DNA of 64,000 bases from Haliotis cracherodii (GCF_022045235.1 NW_027266297.1:20708001-20772000), one strand, 5' to 3'. Numbered from the stretch's first letter, positions 3,404-21,100 are shown. A program made the numbers and translations. Notes: generated from the sequence alone by a model not told the origin.

Positions 3404-3434
3404 ATGCAGGCTCTCATCTTAGCTGTCATTGCAG
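3404..3434 (+). CDS. M4 peptidase paralog 1, coding exon 1 (signal peptide MQALILAVIA)
   Basis: ATG at 3404, donor GCAG|GTAGGT; phase-1 join to 5064 gives MQALILAVIAALCHVMHVDA-AQ signal peptide; homologous exon in paralog 2. Confidence 0.85.
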
Positions 3435-3668
3435 GTAGGTGTCAAAACATTTTTGTCAAACAAAAGTAAATATATAGTTCATTAATTTATCGGAACATTT
3501 TGCTTTATGACCAATCAACGTCAATCTACATATTCATGATGAGGAATATATTTTCCCCTGCATATGCATATTCTTTGTAGAGGTAACTGAAATATTCAAT
3601 CCTTCATCGGGTTGCGAAGACACTCATTACGCTATGAGATTGCATTTAGCTGCACAATACGCTTCATG

Positions 3669-3774
3669 GCTTCGTTCCACAAAGTGATCTTACAAACACG
3701 ATTGTGGCAAGTCTGTGTTAAAGTATGTGAGTTACGATCATCTCAGCGCTGAGATCACTTTGTGGAACTGGGCC
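3669..3774. mobile_element. Small MITE with terminal inverted repeats
   Basis: GGCTTCGTTCCACAAAGTGATCT ... AGATCACTTTGTGGAACTGGGCC. Confidence 0.6.
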
Positions 3775-4123
3775 TACGTCTTGTTTTGTCGGCCAGTAAC
3801 ATGAACAAATGACAGACTAGTAGGTTGGTATAATATTACTTATACTTATACTGAACAAAAGAGGTTAGCGTTCATGAATATTTCTTTTATTTGTTTTAGT
3901 GAAGACTGGGCACAATTTCATAAATATATCCCCCAAATATTCATGGTCGCAAACCATTTTTGTTCAGTATATAAGTATGAACTAGCTAGCTAACTATCTG
4001 CATCGTGCGTGGAATTACTTCAGATAAGTCTTCACGCAAGTATTCGGGTTACCGTGCCCATGTCTGAACATGTCATCCCGAAGATCCAAATGTATGAGTA
4101 TTTCAGTTGTATCTCAGTTGTGT

Positions 4124-4592
4124 CACATGACACTCCTTGGTTGCATTGCTACATTCAAGACGATGTATTTTCTGCTATATAGTTCATAACCATTCTCAGA
4201 TAATATAAAATATACAAAGTACATACAAATTTCGTTATAGACCACTGCATGCCCTTTTGACATACGCATGATCTTCTCTTGGGCGTGAACATGCCTTCCA
4301 GCAAAACAAAACATATTACAATATCAGCAACATATATATTTTACGATATGTTACAAATACACCCAATAAATATTTTAATTTTTATAACACCAATGTGTTT
4401 ACTGCTTAGTGTTTATTCAAAGCGTCAACGCACTGTGTTATATGTTGTATTAGAAAGTTTCCAAATCCAAAGGATTGTCGATTTTCTGAAACTTGTATCC
4501 CCAGTTAACATCGTAGAATTGAAAATGGCCCATGACACTGGGGCGAACTGTCTCAAACGTTCATCGATAGTAAAAAGGTAAAGAGATCTGTG
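4124..4592 (+). repeat. Second copy of the 1220-1667 segment, inside the M4 gene 1 intron
   Basis: Alignment; flanked by a direct repeat containing AGTATTTCAGTTGTATCTC. Confidence 0.85.
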
Positions 4593-16840: not shown

Positions 16841-17943
16841 ATACATTAGGAGAATATTTTCGTATTTCTTCAGCGGAAGGTCGGTGGTTCGATCCCCGGT
16901 CGCGTCTCTCAAAACGACGTTAAAAGATGGACCTTATCGGCTCCGAGTCACTCTACTGTATGAGTGGATTATACATATTAGTCTTGCGGCATGGTGTATG
17001 GTCAGTAGGCTAGCCCTGTAGAACCTGCATTTATCCGGACTGGTACATGTTGACACACGCACGCTCGCATGCACGCTCGCTCGCACGCACGCTCGCACGC
17101 ACGCACCCACACACGCACGCACGCACGTATGCACACACACACGTGCATGCACATCTCTATATACATGTAAGTGCAATAAAATCTTGTACTACTTGCTGTA
17201 GTAGGGATTAAAAACTAACGCTGGATTTGCCCCAACACAATGCAAGAATAAAACACGTATTTCGGGTCGAGATGAGCATGTATCGCCATTTACTAGCCAT
17301 ATGACGGCGGGGGCATACGTTATGTGTCACCAGTGTTGTCCCCATCTGGTGCAATGGAACCAAGGTCATCAGCGTGTCCAGCGTACGTTTAAACCACTAC
17401 AAATTACCCTCCACATCCTGCTGTGATAATCTCCAAAGGATTGAATGTAATTGCATGAGGATCAACCTGAACGGTAACAGTAGTTGCGATGTCATCATAT
17501 TATACAGTTTATCAATGGCAGTACGATTAATCACCAGTTGACTGAGCAAATACCTCTTGCTAAGCGGAAACAAAGACTCGCGGATGTGGAACTAAAAGAT
17601 GCTGGTGTAGATCTTGAACACATAAACTACTAAAGCAAGTTAGGGAACACCCACAAGAGTGTGTTTTGCAATACCTTTCAGCCATGACAGATTAACTGTG
17701 GTCACATTAACAAATCTAGTGTTCTTTAATTTCTTTTGAGTAGTATATGGTGTGTGCATGCGTGTGTTTGTGTGTATGTGTGTATGTGTATTATATACAC
17801 GCACGCACGCACGCAGGCACGCACACACGCACACACGCACGCACGTACACACGCACGCACGCAACAAAGAATAATCGTCCACAAGATGGTACAATGTACT
17901 TATACATACAATTTATTTTATTTTATTCAGACAATTCGGGGCA

Positions 17944-17974
17944 ATGCGCGCCTTTATCTTGACTTTGATTGCAG
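17944..17974 (+). CDS. M4 peptidase paralog 2, coding exon 1 (signal peptide MRAFILTLIA)
   Basis: Acceptor TTTTATTCAG at 17930, ATG at 17944, donor GCAG|GTAGGTGTCAAA identical to paralog 1; phase-1 join to 18486. Confidence 0.85.
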
Positions 17975-18485
17975 GTAGGTGTCAAACAATCAGAACACAA
18001 TCACGAAATATTATGCATCAGTAAGTTATCAGACAATAAGGCTAAATTTATAAATGGAAAATTATCTAACCCAGGATATGCGTAAGCCAATGAGCAGCCC
18101 ACCCACCAGAGCAATTTGTTAGGAAGAAAAATAATGTTGACTCTGGCTTACAAATGTTTCACTGAGCATGCTGAATGTCCTGATATTGTGTTGTGAGAAC
18201 GATGTTCTGCTCCTTTGTTTAGAGAAAAATTGTTGCTTCTGAATCAATGACCGAAAACATATTGAGTCTCTTACAACCCAGTTCCAGGCAGCCCTCCACC
18301 ACTACCTAAGTAAATGGTCCCCCTAATGTAGCATATACTGATTCATTTATGAAAATTCATGAAATGATATGCTTACGACAGTCGTTGACATTATAGAAAA
18401 TCCGTTAAGTTATGAAAATGAAGGGCATGGAGACTTCAAAAGAGTGCCCATAATACACTCGGCTCCTTTTTTTTTTCTTTTACAG

Positions 18486-21100
18486 CTTTGTGTCACGTCA
18501 TGCGCGTGGATGCTGCGCAGGTGCTAGACGCCAACAGCCGCTTCCGGTACTCACTACACCGTAACGGGCGCCAGGCATATCGTCGCCCATCAATTGCCCG
18601 ACTCCTACAGCTTCCTAGCGATGTCACACTCCAAGAAAGCAACACCATCACCACCGTGCATGGCGCAAAACGATGCCGATTACGGGAGTTGTATAAGGGC
18701 ATGCATGTCATAGGGTCGAGTATTGAAGCCGACGTTGACGACATCGGCCGATACAGTGGTGGTGCTGTGACGGGGACGTTGATGCTGTCTATGACCAACG
18801 ACATCCCCAACCCTGGGCTGTGTCATTTGACGGAACAGGCGGCACAGGACATCCTCCTTAAAGAGGAAGGAATAGCCCTAGATATACACATTTTACGTAA
18901 AAGAATCACCAAGAAGGTATTTGTGGACAAAGAACAGAAAGCTCATCTCGTGTTCGCCACTGACATCCTTGTTGAAAACACGTTAAAAGAGTCAAGACCA
19001 TATTACCTCATTGATCGCTGCGACGGTTCGGTTCTTAAGAAGTCAAGAAGGCTGAATACGAAATACCGATTACATGGAGCAGATGTAACTAGCACGGAGG
19101 AGTCTGGGGTGACAAGCACGGAGGAGTTTGGGGTGACAAGCACAGAGGAGTTTGGGGTGACAAGCACGGAGGAGTTTGGGGTGACAAGCACGGAGGAGTT
19201 TAGGGTGACAAGCACGGAAGAGTTTGGGGTGACAAGCACGGAGGATGTCGGGGTGACAAGCACGGAGGAGTTCGGGGTGACAAGCACGGAGGAGTTCGGG
19301 GTAAGCACGGAGGAGTCTGGGGTGACAAGCACGGAGGAGTTTGGGGTGACAAGCACGGAGGAGTCTGGGGTGACAAGCACGGAGGAGTTCGGGGTGACAA
19401 GCACGGAGGAGTTTGGGGTGACAAGCACGGAGGAGTTCGGGGTGACAAGCACGGAGGAGTTTGGGGTGACAAGCACAGAGGAGTTTGGGGTGACAAGCAC
19501 GGAGGGGTTTGGGGTGATAAGCACGGAGGAGTTTGGGGCGACAAGCACGGAGGGGTTTGGGGTGATAAGCACGGAGGAGTTTGGGGTGACAAGCACGGAG
19601 GAGTCTGGGGTGACAAGCACGGAGGAGTTTGGGGTGACAAGCACGGAGGAGTCTGGGGTGACAAGCACGGAGGAGTTTGGGGTGACAAACACGGAGGAGT
19701 TTGGGGTGACAAGCACGGAGGAGTTTGGGGTGACAAGCACGGAGGAGTTTGGGGTGACAAGCACGGAGGAGTTTGGGGTGACAAGCACGGAGGAGTTCGG
19801 AGCAGAGGAAACCTCCACTGAGAGTGAGCCCTCAGCAACTGTCACAGTACCAGCCGAACCTGACGGTCAGTGTGCAACCTTTGTGAAGGGGACCGGTGGT
19901 AACCCAAAGACAGGAGCCATCGTATACAGCACACACCCCTACTGTCTCGACGTGAGAGTGGAGGGAGACATGTGCTTCCTGGAAAATAAATATGTCAAGG
20001 TCGTTGATCTGAAACAGACAAAAAACGAAGAGAAGACTGAGGTTGTTAGCTTCAAATGCTCAGACGGGTACAACGACGCCATCAACGAAGCCACGAACCC
20101 CGTCCTCGACGCCCTCTTCTATGGCACAGCTACTTTTAAATTGTTTGAAGACTGGTATAACACTAAACCGCTGAATATTCAACAATCATGGCTCCTGGTT
20201 CATTACGGTAACATGATTGATAACGCTTACTGGAACGGAGGGAAGATGTTATTTGGGGATGGAAGCCAAGACGAGAGTTATCCCCAAGTAGGACCTGATG
20301 TCATAGGTCACGAGCTTGGACATGCGATATCAGAGCAGCACTCTGAGTTAGAGTACTCTGGACAGTCGGGCGGGATTGATGAAGCCTTCTCTGACATTGC
20401 AGGAGAAGTTATAGAGGCGTATGTTCGTAAAACTGATTGGCTAGTCGGTTTCTATCTATCAAAGTCAAACACGAAAGCGCTGAGATATTTTGAAGACCCA
20501 ACCAGGGATGGAAACTCTATAAAAGAGGCCAAATATTTTGAAAGCGACATGGACGTCCACTTTAGTAGCGGCGTATTCAACCACGCCTTCTACCAGATCG
20601 TCGAAGTCGGGAAGATCCCGATCAAATACGCGTTTGAGAGTTTCTATATCGCCAACAGATTGTACTGGAAAGAGGACACGGGGTTCGTCGATGGCGCATG
20701 TTCCACTATCCGGGGCGCTTACGATGCTGGCTTGGACACGGAGATATACGCAGCAGCCTTCACAGCTGTAGGGGTCAATGCTTGTCCTTTGACCAAATTT
20801 CTTGAGATGGTGACCCCATCAAACAAACGCTCCAACATCCGGGTATCCAGCATCCGACAACCATTGTTTGGCATCAATACCAAAGATGCTACCAAGAAGA
20901 TCGTTGTGGAGGCTGTTAGTGTGTCTGGAGCGGCTGTGAAACTGGCGCTGTCGAGGACGGTGTCTCGAAGTAACCCTGCTGCTTCAGGGACTGGGAGGGT
21001 GGAGATGACCGTGTCGGGAATAGCTTTGTACTACGTCCGCGTCTTCACCGACACCATCTACGAGATCAATGATGTCAAGATCACTTTGAAATTGGAATAG
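18486..21100 (+). CDS. M4 zinc metalloprotease paralog 2, main exon (~881 aa with exon 1)
   Basis: Acceptor TTTACAG at 18485; same architecture; HELGH (20309-20323), [19 protein letters not shown]; AATAAA near 21168. Confidence 0.95.
19085..19801 (+). repeat. Coding 24-nt minisatellite, ~30 x VTSTEEFG
   Basis: GTGACAAGCACGGAGGAGTTTGGG units, frame preserved (one 3-nt deletion). Confidence 0.97.

Follow-up and report, generated by a model that had tools for sequence, protein, structure and literature searches.

Two pseudolysin/vibriolysin-type M4 metalloprotease genes of probable ancient bacterial origin in the genome of the abalone Haliotis cracherodii

Introduction

The best-known M4 proteases of the pseudolysin/vibriolysin type, such as LasB, vibriolysin and HapA, are virulence factors of bacteria, among them mollusc-killing Vibrio. 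In this study, two genes encoding proteins of this type were analysed in a stretch of 64,000 nucleotides from the black abalone Haliotis cracherodii (GCF_022045235.1 NW_027266297.1:20708001-20772000), hereafter the window, which corresponds to positions 20,708,001-20,772,000 of the 73-Mb chromosome contig C34 and contains 416 N. Both genes lie on the + strand, gene 1 at window positions 3404-7144 and gene 2 at 17944-21100. An earlier note on this DNA had regarded them as a tandem pair of bacterial-type M4 proteases retained by a mollusc. Taken together, the data make it probable that the two genes encode secreted M4 zymogens of the pseudolysin/vibriolysin branch, descended from a single bacterial transfer at or before the origin of Mollusca.

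The closest described system by sequence is LasB or pseudolysin, the elastase of Pseudomonas aeruginosa (MEROPS family M4; structure 1ezm, pro-form 8cr3), which gave the best match among solved structures (270 bits). The abalone proteins share with LasB about 42% identity, a template modelling (TM) score of 0.95, the zinc ligands, the catalytic Glu, Tyr and His, the cysteines of both disulfides, the Ca2+ site and the organization as a pre-pro-enzyme. Features not shared with LasB are a eukaryotic signal peptide interrupted by an intron, a long linker of repeats that joins the propeptide to the mature domain, an additional pair of cysteines at the N-terminus of the mature enzyme and, at the C-terminus, a domain resembling the pre-peptidase C-terminal (PPC) domain. 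By structure, the best match is the vibriolysin MCP-02 of Pseudoalteromonas (3nqx, 3nqy and 3nqz), in which the propeptide, catalytic domain and PPC domain follow one another in the same order. However, MCP-02-type enzymes carry a canonical PPC domain that is recognised by Pfam, whereas the GGSGDADLY motif has disappeared from the mollusc domain, which is seen only by profile or fold; moreover, the bacterial enzymes of this type have no repeat linker. Thermolysin, bacillolysin and aureolysin belong to the same family and share the fold and catalytic mechanism, but are more distant (74-118 bits, TM 0.77-0.82, 23-28% identity and a separating branch with a support of 100).

Comparable cases are the GH32 fructosidases of invertebrates (PMC11311677) and components of centipede venom (PMC7864903), in which the gene of a bacterial secreted enzyme was fixed in an animal, with an intron, a host signal peptide and duplication. 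The abalone genes differ from these in encoding a "virulence-type" M4 protease and in their retention across a phylum (four classes). No description of mollusc M4 genes was found in the main text of a compendium of metazoan horizontal gene transfer (PMC13342648). As the earlier note had supposed, M4-like models have already been annotated automatically in molluscs, with RefSeq models among them, and in more than 20 mollusc genomes they stand under borrowed bacterial names. In a full-text literature search that covered few subscription journals, no work was found on the family, on where it came from or on what it does; a paper behind the GenBank entry AJF36072.1 may exist. These genes are not a new kind of system, and they are notable for their age, their spread across the phylum and an enzyme type shared with virulence factors of mollusc pathogens.

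Domain organization of the two proteins

Two intact open reading frames (ORFs) were found as the earlier note had described, at 5066..7144 in gene 1 (692 aa) and at 18488..21100 in gene 2 (870 aa). Both encode the Pfam domains Peptidase_M4 (PF01447) and Peptidase_M4_C (PF02868), which scored 99.8 and 100 bits in gene 1 and 85 and 100.6 bits in gene 2, far above the respective cut-offs of 22.4 and 24.4 bits. The layout is common to both genes: a 31-nt first coding exon, a GT..AG intron within the signal peptide and one large exon, which comprises a predicted propeptide, a repeat linker, the M4 catalytic domain and a predicted degenerate PPC domain. The features, with repeats as called by Tandem Repeats Finder (TRF) and confidence as the predicted local distance difference test (pLDDT) of AlphaFold2 (AF2), are as follows; a slash within a sequence marks a junction.

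Gene 1
3404..3434, + strand: first coding exon, ATG plus 10 1/3 codons (MQALILAVIA-), first half of the signal peptide
3435..5063, + strand: intron of 1629 nt, GT..AG, phase 1, with the acceptor TTTACAG/CT
5064..7144, + strand: large exon, coding part including the stop; ORF, 100% identity to P0001, covered by X1 contig records 7 (5061-5673) and 8 (5744-7194)
5093..5644, + strand: propeptide, predicted two-lobed intramolecular chaperone and inhibitor of the FTP/PepSY type; AF2 pLDDT >90, ORF residues ~10-193
5645..5893, + strand: predicted disordered linker rich in Thr, Ser and Gly, with a 27-nt tandem repeat at 5678-5769 (3.4 copies, DWGTGETTL; TRF)
5930..6823, + strand: catalytic domain, Peptidase_M4 and M4_C (Pfam E 2e-28, both domains)
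6824..7141, + strand: C-terminal all-beta domain, predicted degenerate PPC; AF2 pLDDT 93.4 for the C-terminal 109 residues modelled alone

Gene 2
17944..17974, + strand: first coding exon (MRAFILTLIA-), N-terminus of the RefSeq model P0004
17975..18485, + strand: intron of 511 nt, GT..AG, phase 1; P0004 equals the ORF plus 11 residues
18486..21100, + strand: large exon, coding part including the stop; ORF, Pfam M4 E 9e-24 and M4_C E 1e-28, DVHFSSG intact
about 18515-19072, + strand: propeptide, within the large exon
19091..19797, + strand: linker, a 24-nt tandem repeat of 29.6 copies (TSTEEFGV), in frame (TRF)
about 19886-20779, + strand: catalytic domain, within the large exon
about 20780-21097, + strand: PPC-like domain, within the large exon

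The motifs GGNxKTG, NAFW, HExxH, GGxxEAFSD and DVHxSSG, on which the earlier note had relied, are all present. When gene 1 was mapped on 1ezm, the catalytic motifs were HELAH, the Glu in GGIDEAFSD, the Tyr in LEYSG and the His in DVHFSSG. In LasB numbering, both genes keep the zinc ligands His140, His144 and Glu164, the catalytic residues Glu141, Tyr155 and His223, the pairs Cys30-Cys58 and Cys270-Cys297, and the Ca2+ ligands Asp136, Glu172, Glu175 and Asp183. Among the 34 mollusc proteins compared, His140, Glu141, His144, Glu164 and His223 were invariant and the four cysteines were conserved (34/34 in each case), and a disulfide would be expected at both pairs. Moreover, an extra cysteine pair specific to molluscs (residues 285 and 309 of the gene 1 ORF, window ~5918-5920 and 5990-5992) occurs in 30-31 of the 34 proteins and is absent from the sister sequences described below and from bacteria. 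One of these two cysteines lies upstream of the bacterial mature N-terminus, a position which suggests either a different processing site or an N-terminal tether.

The relationship to the Vibrio/Pseudomonas branch was evident from several comparisons, for which the spliced proteins were taken as the RefSeq entries P0001 and P0004. The best NCBIfam model for both genes was the Legionella ProA equivalog, a partial match of 229-248 bits, against 32 bits for the thermolysin-side comparison. In the ranking of PDB sequences, pro-elastase/LasB of Pseudomonas came first (270 bits), followed by MCP-02 (239 bits), Legionella ProA (192 bits) and the group of thermolysin, bacillolysin and aureolysin (74-118 bits). 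The N-terminal region separately matched the MCP-02 propeptide chain 3nqy_A (phmmer, E 5e-9). The AF2 model of the exon-2 product of gene 1, built from a 48-row alignment, had a mean pLDDT of 86.6 and a predicted TM score (pTM) of 0.85, and consisted of a folded propeptide, a disordered stretch, the catalytic domain (pLDDT >90) and a C-terminal beta domain. In Foldseek searches, the catalytic part matched MCP-02 with TM 0.96 (root mean square deviation 1.2 A), LasB with 0.95 and thermolysin with 0.80. These bit scores and TM scores, together with the phylogenetic branch with a support of 100 described below, bear out the placement in the Vibrio/Pseudomonas-type branch of M4 that had been proposed earlier.

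The domains flanking the catalytic core were recognised less readily by Pfam than by fold. The FTP domain of gene 1 reached 17.4 bits, below the cut-off of 21, gene 2 had no Pfam FTP match, and PepSY and PPC had no Pfam match in either gene. Across the 34 mollusc proteins, FTP was matched in 18, PepSY in 2 and PPC (PF04151) in none. At the level of the predicted fold, the gene 1 propeptide matched the MCP-02 propeptide chains 3nqy_A/3nqz_A (Foldseek E 7e-11, TM 0.79-0.81), and the top match of the C-terminal domain was 5sv5, a solved PPC domain (E 6.7e-5, TM 0.60); next in rank came collagen-binding domains of the PPC type, from ColG and ColH. Furthermore, hhalign aligned 35 mollusc tails with PPC-bearing tails over the whole domain (92%, E 7e-7), the mollusc YYVRV motif being aligned to the PPC strand YYVMV. 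Thus, the full preproenzyme layout claimed earlier, with a tail derived from PPC, was recovered in the predicted folds, and not by Pfam, and the flanking domains appear to be degenerate.

We infer from homology with LasB and MCP-02 that the signal peptide, split by an intron of host type, would direct the products into the secretory pathway, where the FTP/PepSY-type propeptide would fold the catalytic domain and inhibit it until autoprocessing. In the mature enzyme, zinc would be held by the His-Glu-x-x-His motif and the downstream Glu, and the Tyr and His would stabilise the transition state. The disordered Thr/Ser-rich repeat linker at the propeptide end is probably O-glycosylated, and the degenerate PPC beta domain probably either aids substrate binding or is trimmed off. 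That the products are secreted zymogens which autoprocess to active zinc endopeptidases is, by this analogy, highly probable.

The DNA of gene 1 and gene 2 is similar in two blocks (5048-5639 with 18470-19061, 85%; 5892-7195 with 19845-21151, 92%), and the introns and flanks are not alignable. The linker is the only part of the large exon that the genes do not have in common; that of gene 1 had a pLDDT of ~30 (ORF residues 194-276) and could not be aligned to that of gene 2. The identity is uneven along the exon, ranging from 100% over codons 331-360 to 82% around HExxH. Estimates by the Nei-Gojobori method for gene 1 against gene 2 gave a ratio of nonsynonymous to synonymous divergence (dN/dS) of 0.375 for the propeptide (dS 0.34), 0.256 for the catalytic domain (dS 0.19) and 0.31 for the PPC-like domain (dS 0.20), values which indicate purifying selection on both genes.

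Splicing and transcription of the genes

A 31-nt coding exon of the form ATG...GCAG/GTAGGTGTCAAA stands ahead of each ORF, at 3404-3434 and 17944-17974, and a pyrimidine tract with an AG acceptor precedes each large ORF. The donor of gene 1 is GCAG/GTAGGT, and 3404..3434 marks the coding part of its exon 1; the donor of gene 2, GCAG/GTAGGTGTCAAA, is identical. Joining 3434 to 5064 yields MQALILAVIA-A-LCHVMHVDA/AQ..., a typical signal peptide cut by a phase-1 intron, and the spliced product equals the RefSeq model P0001 (703 aa, "virulence metalloprotease-like"). Likewise, the 17974/18486 splice of gene 2, with GT..AG ends, yields an N-terminus resembling a signal peptide and equals the RefSeq model P0004 (881 aa). 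Both junctions had been predicted in the earlier note.

Transcripts were checked in window 3300-7300 with contigs of four runs from four studies. The joint 3431->5061 ("cut +3", that is 3434/5064), which skips 1629 nt with GT..AG ends, was found in contigs of X1 and X5, from two studies. In X1, X5 and X9 the unique bins of the intron had zero depth, yet contigs lay along the exon, whereas in X15, a large, DNA-like run, all bins including those of the intron were covered and the 3434/5064 joint was absent. The kind of run on record was only a guess, and the runs were taken as RNA because of the GT..AG joint together with the empty intron. The transcript contigs differed from the window by ~1.5% and derive from another individual or a close species. 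Gene 1 is therefore transcribed and spliced, as the earlier note had asked to be checked.

High-copy repeats with many rearranged joints were seen in the intron of gene 1, at 3700-3970 and 4506-4780. The summed contig depth in the DNA-like run was 3,000-133,000 at 3702-3835 and ~9,000 at 4506-4639, which is consistent with SINE-like (short interspersed nuclear element) or other interspersed elements. In addition, a pyrimidine tract ending in CAG lies 15-16 nt before both start codons (3381-3403, tcttttcag; 17921-17943, ttttattcag). Both genes may have a further intron in the 5' untranslated region.

Phylogenetic position

An exhaustive HMMER search of 1.84 billion representatives gave 11,213 representative M4 clusters, and the family is overwhelmingly bacterial. 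A FastTree phylogeny built from 259 catalytic domains placed every named mollusc sequence in a single 55-row clade (support 100). The clade comprises Gastropoda (five species of Haliotis, Gigantopelta, Patella, Pomacea, Batillaria, Nucella, Aplysia, Physella and Lymnaea), Bivalvia (Pecten, Ylistrum, Pinctada and Ruditapes), Cephalopoda (three species of Octopus, and Argonauta) and Polyplacophora (the chiton Liolophura), and contains no named non-mollusc. Since one clade spans four mollusc classes, the last common ancestor of the molluscs, or an older one, already had the gene, which has been inherited vertically since. The closest named bacterial loci, with 43-50% identity, belong to the marine Gammaproteobacteria (Shewanella, Pseudoalteromonas, Vibrio, Algicola, Ferrimonas, Microbulbifer and Aeromonas).

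In an IQ-TREE analysis under LG+C20, the outgroups were distantly related M4s encoded on annotated plasmids of Bacillus cereus, B. velezensis, Streptomyces and Chondrinema. The outgroups were separated from the rest with a support of 100, and the mollusc clade, here of 42 rows, had a support of 99. Accordingly, a branch with a support of 100 sets the mollusc clade and the bacterial pseudolysin types apart from the M4s of Bacillus, Streptomyces and Chondrinema. A sub-clade of 22 rows (support 98) contains the chiton, then cephalopods, bivalves, and Patella, Haliotis, Pomacea and Batillaria, an order which matches the expectation of vertical descent. The window genes lie within a branch made up of gastropods only.

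The gene family in abalone

A six-frame search of the whole assembly with PF01447 revealed 14 loci: six on C34 (the window pair and four on the opposite strand, 17-43 kb upstream of the window), seven on C45 and one fragment on C12. The frame is open in 13 of them (633-892 codons), with HExxH and GGxNEAFSD intact. Thus, the "tandem pair" of the earlier note is too narrow a description: the two genes in the window would be tandem duplicates within the gastropod-only branch of a family with at least 13 intact genes in two clusters. The copy on C12 (L177, G000:C12:51781000-51788000) is broken into frames of 182 aa and 339 aa that do not share a phase, has lost the zinc-ligand motif (…DDQSGEA…) and looks like a pseudogene; it is preceded by a Thr-rich repeat resembling the linkers of the intact genes.

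The four other genes on C34 (L166-L169, G000:C34:20663700-20696100, - strand) are intact M4 genes of 699-709 codons, of the "AARRFNVAG" type, and stand head-to-head with the window pair. Their catalytic domains share ~53% identity with those of the window genes, so the C34 cluster mixes two old subfamilies. All intact copies have pyrimidine-rich codons and then the latter half of a signal peptide ahead of the frame, as in ...FIFYSG/LLALTVYNIEAARRVNV, and the RefSeq model P0010 starts with MNFCLIQLG-LLALTVY; the signal-peptide intron thus appears to be common to all abalone subfamilies. Corresponding genes lie on one chromosome or contig in H. asinina and in H. rufescens, and orthologues were found in four other Haliotis genomes. 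A hand-submitted GenBank entry, AJF36072.1, "metalloprotease [Haliotis discus hannai]", is a member of a paralogue cluster.

Sister sequences

The mollusc clade was joined (support 98) to 11 sister sequences that have no Pfam PPC match, and this group in turn (support 97) to the PPC-bearing sequences P0165, P0315, P0317 and P0235. A search seeded with the sisters added ~20 sequences, whose ENA contigs are 0.75-7.5 Mb long; as many as five paralogues share a single contig of 1.19 Mb. A protein atlas searched with the sister P0303 yielded bacterial M4 and M36 clusters only. The members of this family, which have two degenerate PPC domains and a propeptide starting with "ARKVDV", are as follows.

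P0302-P0321, P0150, P0160 and P0231: ENA
L086: JGI, Ga0307403_10016665

In all 58 rows, the propeptide starts with the motif A-A/G-R-R/K-V-D/N straight after the signal peptide, and ordinary bacterial vibriolysins do not have it. Many of the ENA models begin abruptly at the ARRVD-type motif or read through T-rich codons ahead of it, as would be expected when a prokaryotic gene caller is applied to a gene with an intron at this place. The contig L086 (2,470 nt) looks like an mRNA: its 36-nt leader lacks a Shine-Dalgarno sequence, the signal peptide is complete and AATAAA occurs ~40 nt past the stop. The sisters are therefore probably eukaryotic. Over their 220-residue tails, hhalign gave matches to two PPC domains (97%, E 1e-10). 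From these comparisons we conclude that the PPC domains form a probable series, from two canonical domains at an earlier stage, through two degenerate domains, to the single degenerate domain of the molluscs.

Origin and function of the genes

The transfer of the family ancestor from a bacterium, most likely once and at or before the origin of Mollusca, is favoured because the clade stands on the pseudolysin side of the split with a support of 100 in an overwhelmingly bacterial family, and because the whole architecture of the bacterial secretion type has been kept. After the transfer, the signal-peptide intron and the extra cysteine pair would have been gained and the PPC domain would have degenerated. 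A gammaproteobacterial donor, as proposed in the earlier note, is plausible from similarity, and the bacterial origin is the best reading of the data. The genes are intact and under selection, and have been retained and duplicated as had been suggested, but the clade spans four classes and the recipient was possibly not a mollusc.

Several observations weigh against this interpretation. The placement inside the bacterial pseudolysin group is weak, with backbone supports of 81-89 and Fulvimonas and Rhodanobacter nearest at 86. All IQ-TREE supports came from a quick search and are values of the Shimodaira-Hasegawa approximate likelihood-ratio test (SH-aLRT) only, without bootstraps. In the approximately unbiased (AU) test (74 rows, LG+G4), a tree in which the pseudolysin-type bacteria form one clade excluding the eukaryote-like clade was not rejected (p 0.70). 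Owing to this value and the weak backbone, nesting among the pseudolysin bacteria and any particular donor lineage are unproven. At least some of the 16 nearest sister sequences look eukaryotic, and the recipient may have been older than the molluscs, or the gene may have spread from eukaryote to eukaryote. In addition, the splice of gene 2 is taken from the RefSeq model.

One alternative is ancient vertical inheritance, in which an M4 gene of early eukaryotes or animals was lost nearly everywhere except in molluscs and a few marine lineages. The breadth of the clade, its internal agreement with the species tree, the AU test, which permits a place outside all sampled pseudolysin-type bacteria, and the eukaryotic appearance of the sisters would all suit this explanation. 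However, no named non-mollusc eukaryote was among the best matches of three large searches, and the identity of 43-50% to gammaproteobacterial enzymes compares with ~25-30% to thermolysin-type M4s. The clade also lies on the pseudolysin side of bacterial diversity, keeps the bacterial layout of FTP/PepSY propeptide and PPC, and has its coding sequence in a single exon apart from the signal-peptide intron, so that vertical inheritance is considered unlikely. The earlier note had named a broad, vertically inherited eukaryotic clade outside the bacteria as the pattern that would speak against a transfer; the breadth and the vertical inheritance were found, but at the level of the family the clade is not outside the bacteria. 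Several independent or recent transfers into separate mollusc lineages could be imagined, since molluscs live with Vibrio, Pseudoalteromonas and Shewanella, the carriers of the closest enzymes, and the distribution among molluscs looked patchy in the first search. This explanation is already disfavoured and very improbable, as all mollusc sequences form one clade (support 99), share characters not found in bacteria (the extra cysteine pair, the single degenerate PPC and the "AARRVD" start) and, in all abalone subfamilies, apparently have the signal-peptide intron at the same place.

The remaining alternatives concern the reality and the activity of the genes. The bacterial character of the family and the GC content of the main exon (0.51, above the window average) could suggest contamination or misassembly, and the earlier note had judged simple contamination unlikely. 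This possibility is effectively refuted: the spliceosomal intron is used in transcripts of two studies, the contig is 73 Mb long, the intron carries high-copy host repeats, an exon of fibrinogen type lies close by, 13 paralogues lie on two chromosomes, orthologues are conserved in other Haliotis genomes, and the identity to any bacterium is <=50%. On these grounds contamination is excluded, and the genes are genuinely part of the host genome. Catalytically dead binding proteins or decaying pseudogenes would be in keeping with a PPC domain and a propeptide too degenerate for Pfam, with unusual residues past the second zinc histidine of gene 2 and with the fragmented copy on chromosome 12. On the other hand, all zinc ligands and catalytic residues are kept in both genes and in 34/34 relatives, the dN/dS of the catalytic domain is 0.26, both frames (692 and 870 codons) are unbroken, transcripts of gene 1 were seen and the fold is confidently predicted, and the probability of inactive products is accordingly put as slight, a little below that of repeated transfers.

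Under the preferred reading of a single bacterial transfer, a broader scenario can be drawn, to which we give about an even chance. One bacterial protease gene would have entered an animal or an earlier marine eukaryote before the mollusc classes arose, would have been kept active and secreted for more than half a billion years, and would have expanded repeatedly, to 13 copies in abalone. The sisters with the ARRVD motif, some with canonical PPC domains, would be other eukaryotic descendants that record the steps of domestication. If a single transfer before the origin of the classes is true, few animal proteases derived from bacteria would be as old and as widely retained as these enzymes, and the family would provide a well-anchored, dated example of ancient gene gain by an animal from bacteria. 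The steps that would be visible are the signal-peptide intron, a new disulfide, the decay of PPC and the mucin-like linkers.

As for function, digestion is an obvious guess, but the enzymes may just as well act in the turnover of mucus or matrix, in defence or in larval processes. Pomacea has several of these genes, yet proteolysis in its gut lumen was mainly serine-type and aprotinin-sensitive, and ethylenediaminetetraacetic acid (EDTA) had no significant effect (PMC3688566), which is mild evidence against a dominant digestive role. Molluscs have a family of this enzyme type of their own, spread over the phylum, expanded and kept by selection. Host M4s could possibly confound assays and transcript annotations ("virulence metalloprotease-like") in studies of mollusc disease.

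Other features of the window

A Fibrinogen_C ORF of 228 aa (22671-23357, - strand, E 1e-23) lies 1.6 kb downstream of gene 2, and probably represents one exon of a fibrinogen-related (FREP-like) gene. A minisatellite with a 22-nt unit separates gene 1 from gene 2, at 14214-16839 (~119.5 copies, 89% matches), and gives rise to many spurious long ORFs on the minus strand. Just upstream of the first coding exon of gene 2, at 17760-17860, there is an imperfect (GT)n microsatellite followed by (GCAC/ACGC)n. Rfam gave no match within the window. Positions 50001-54000 show a strong negative GC skew (-0.29, -0.19), and an ORF at 50389-51054 (- strand) had only low-complexity, sub-threshold Pfam matches; the region probably consists of simple repeats.

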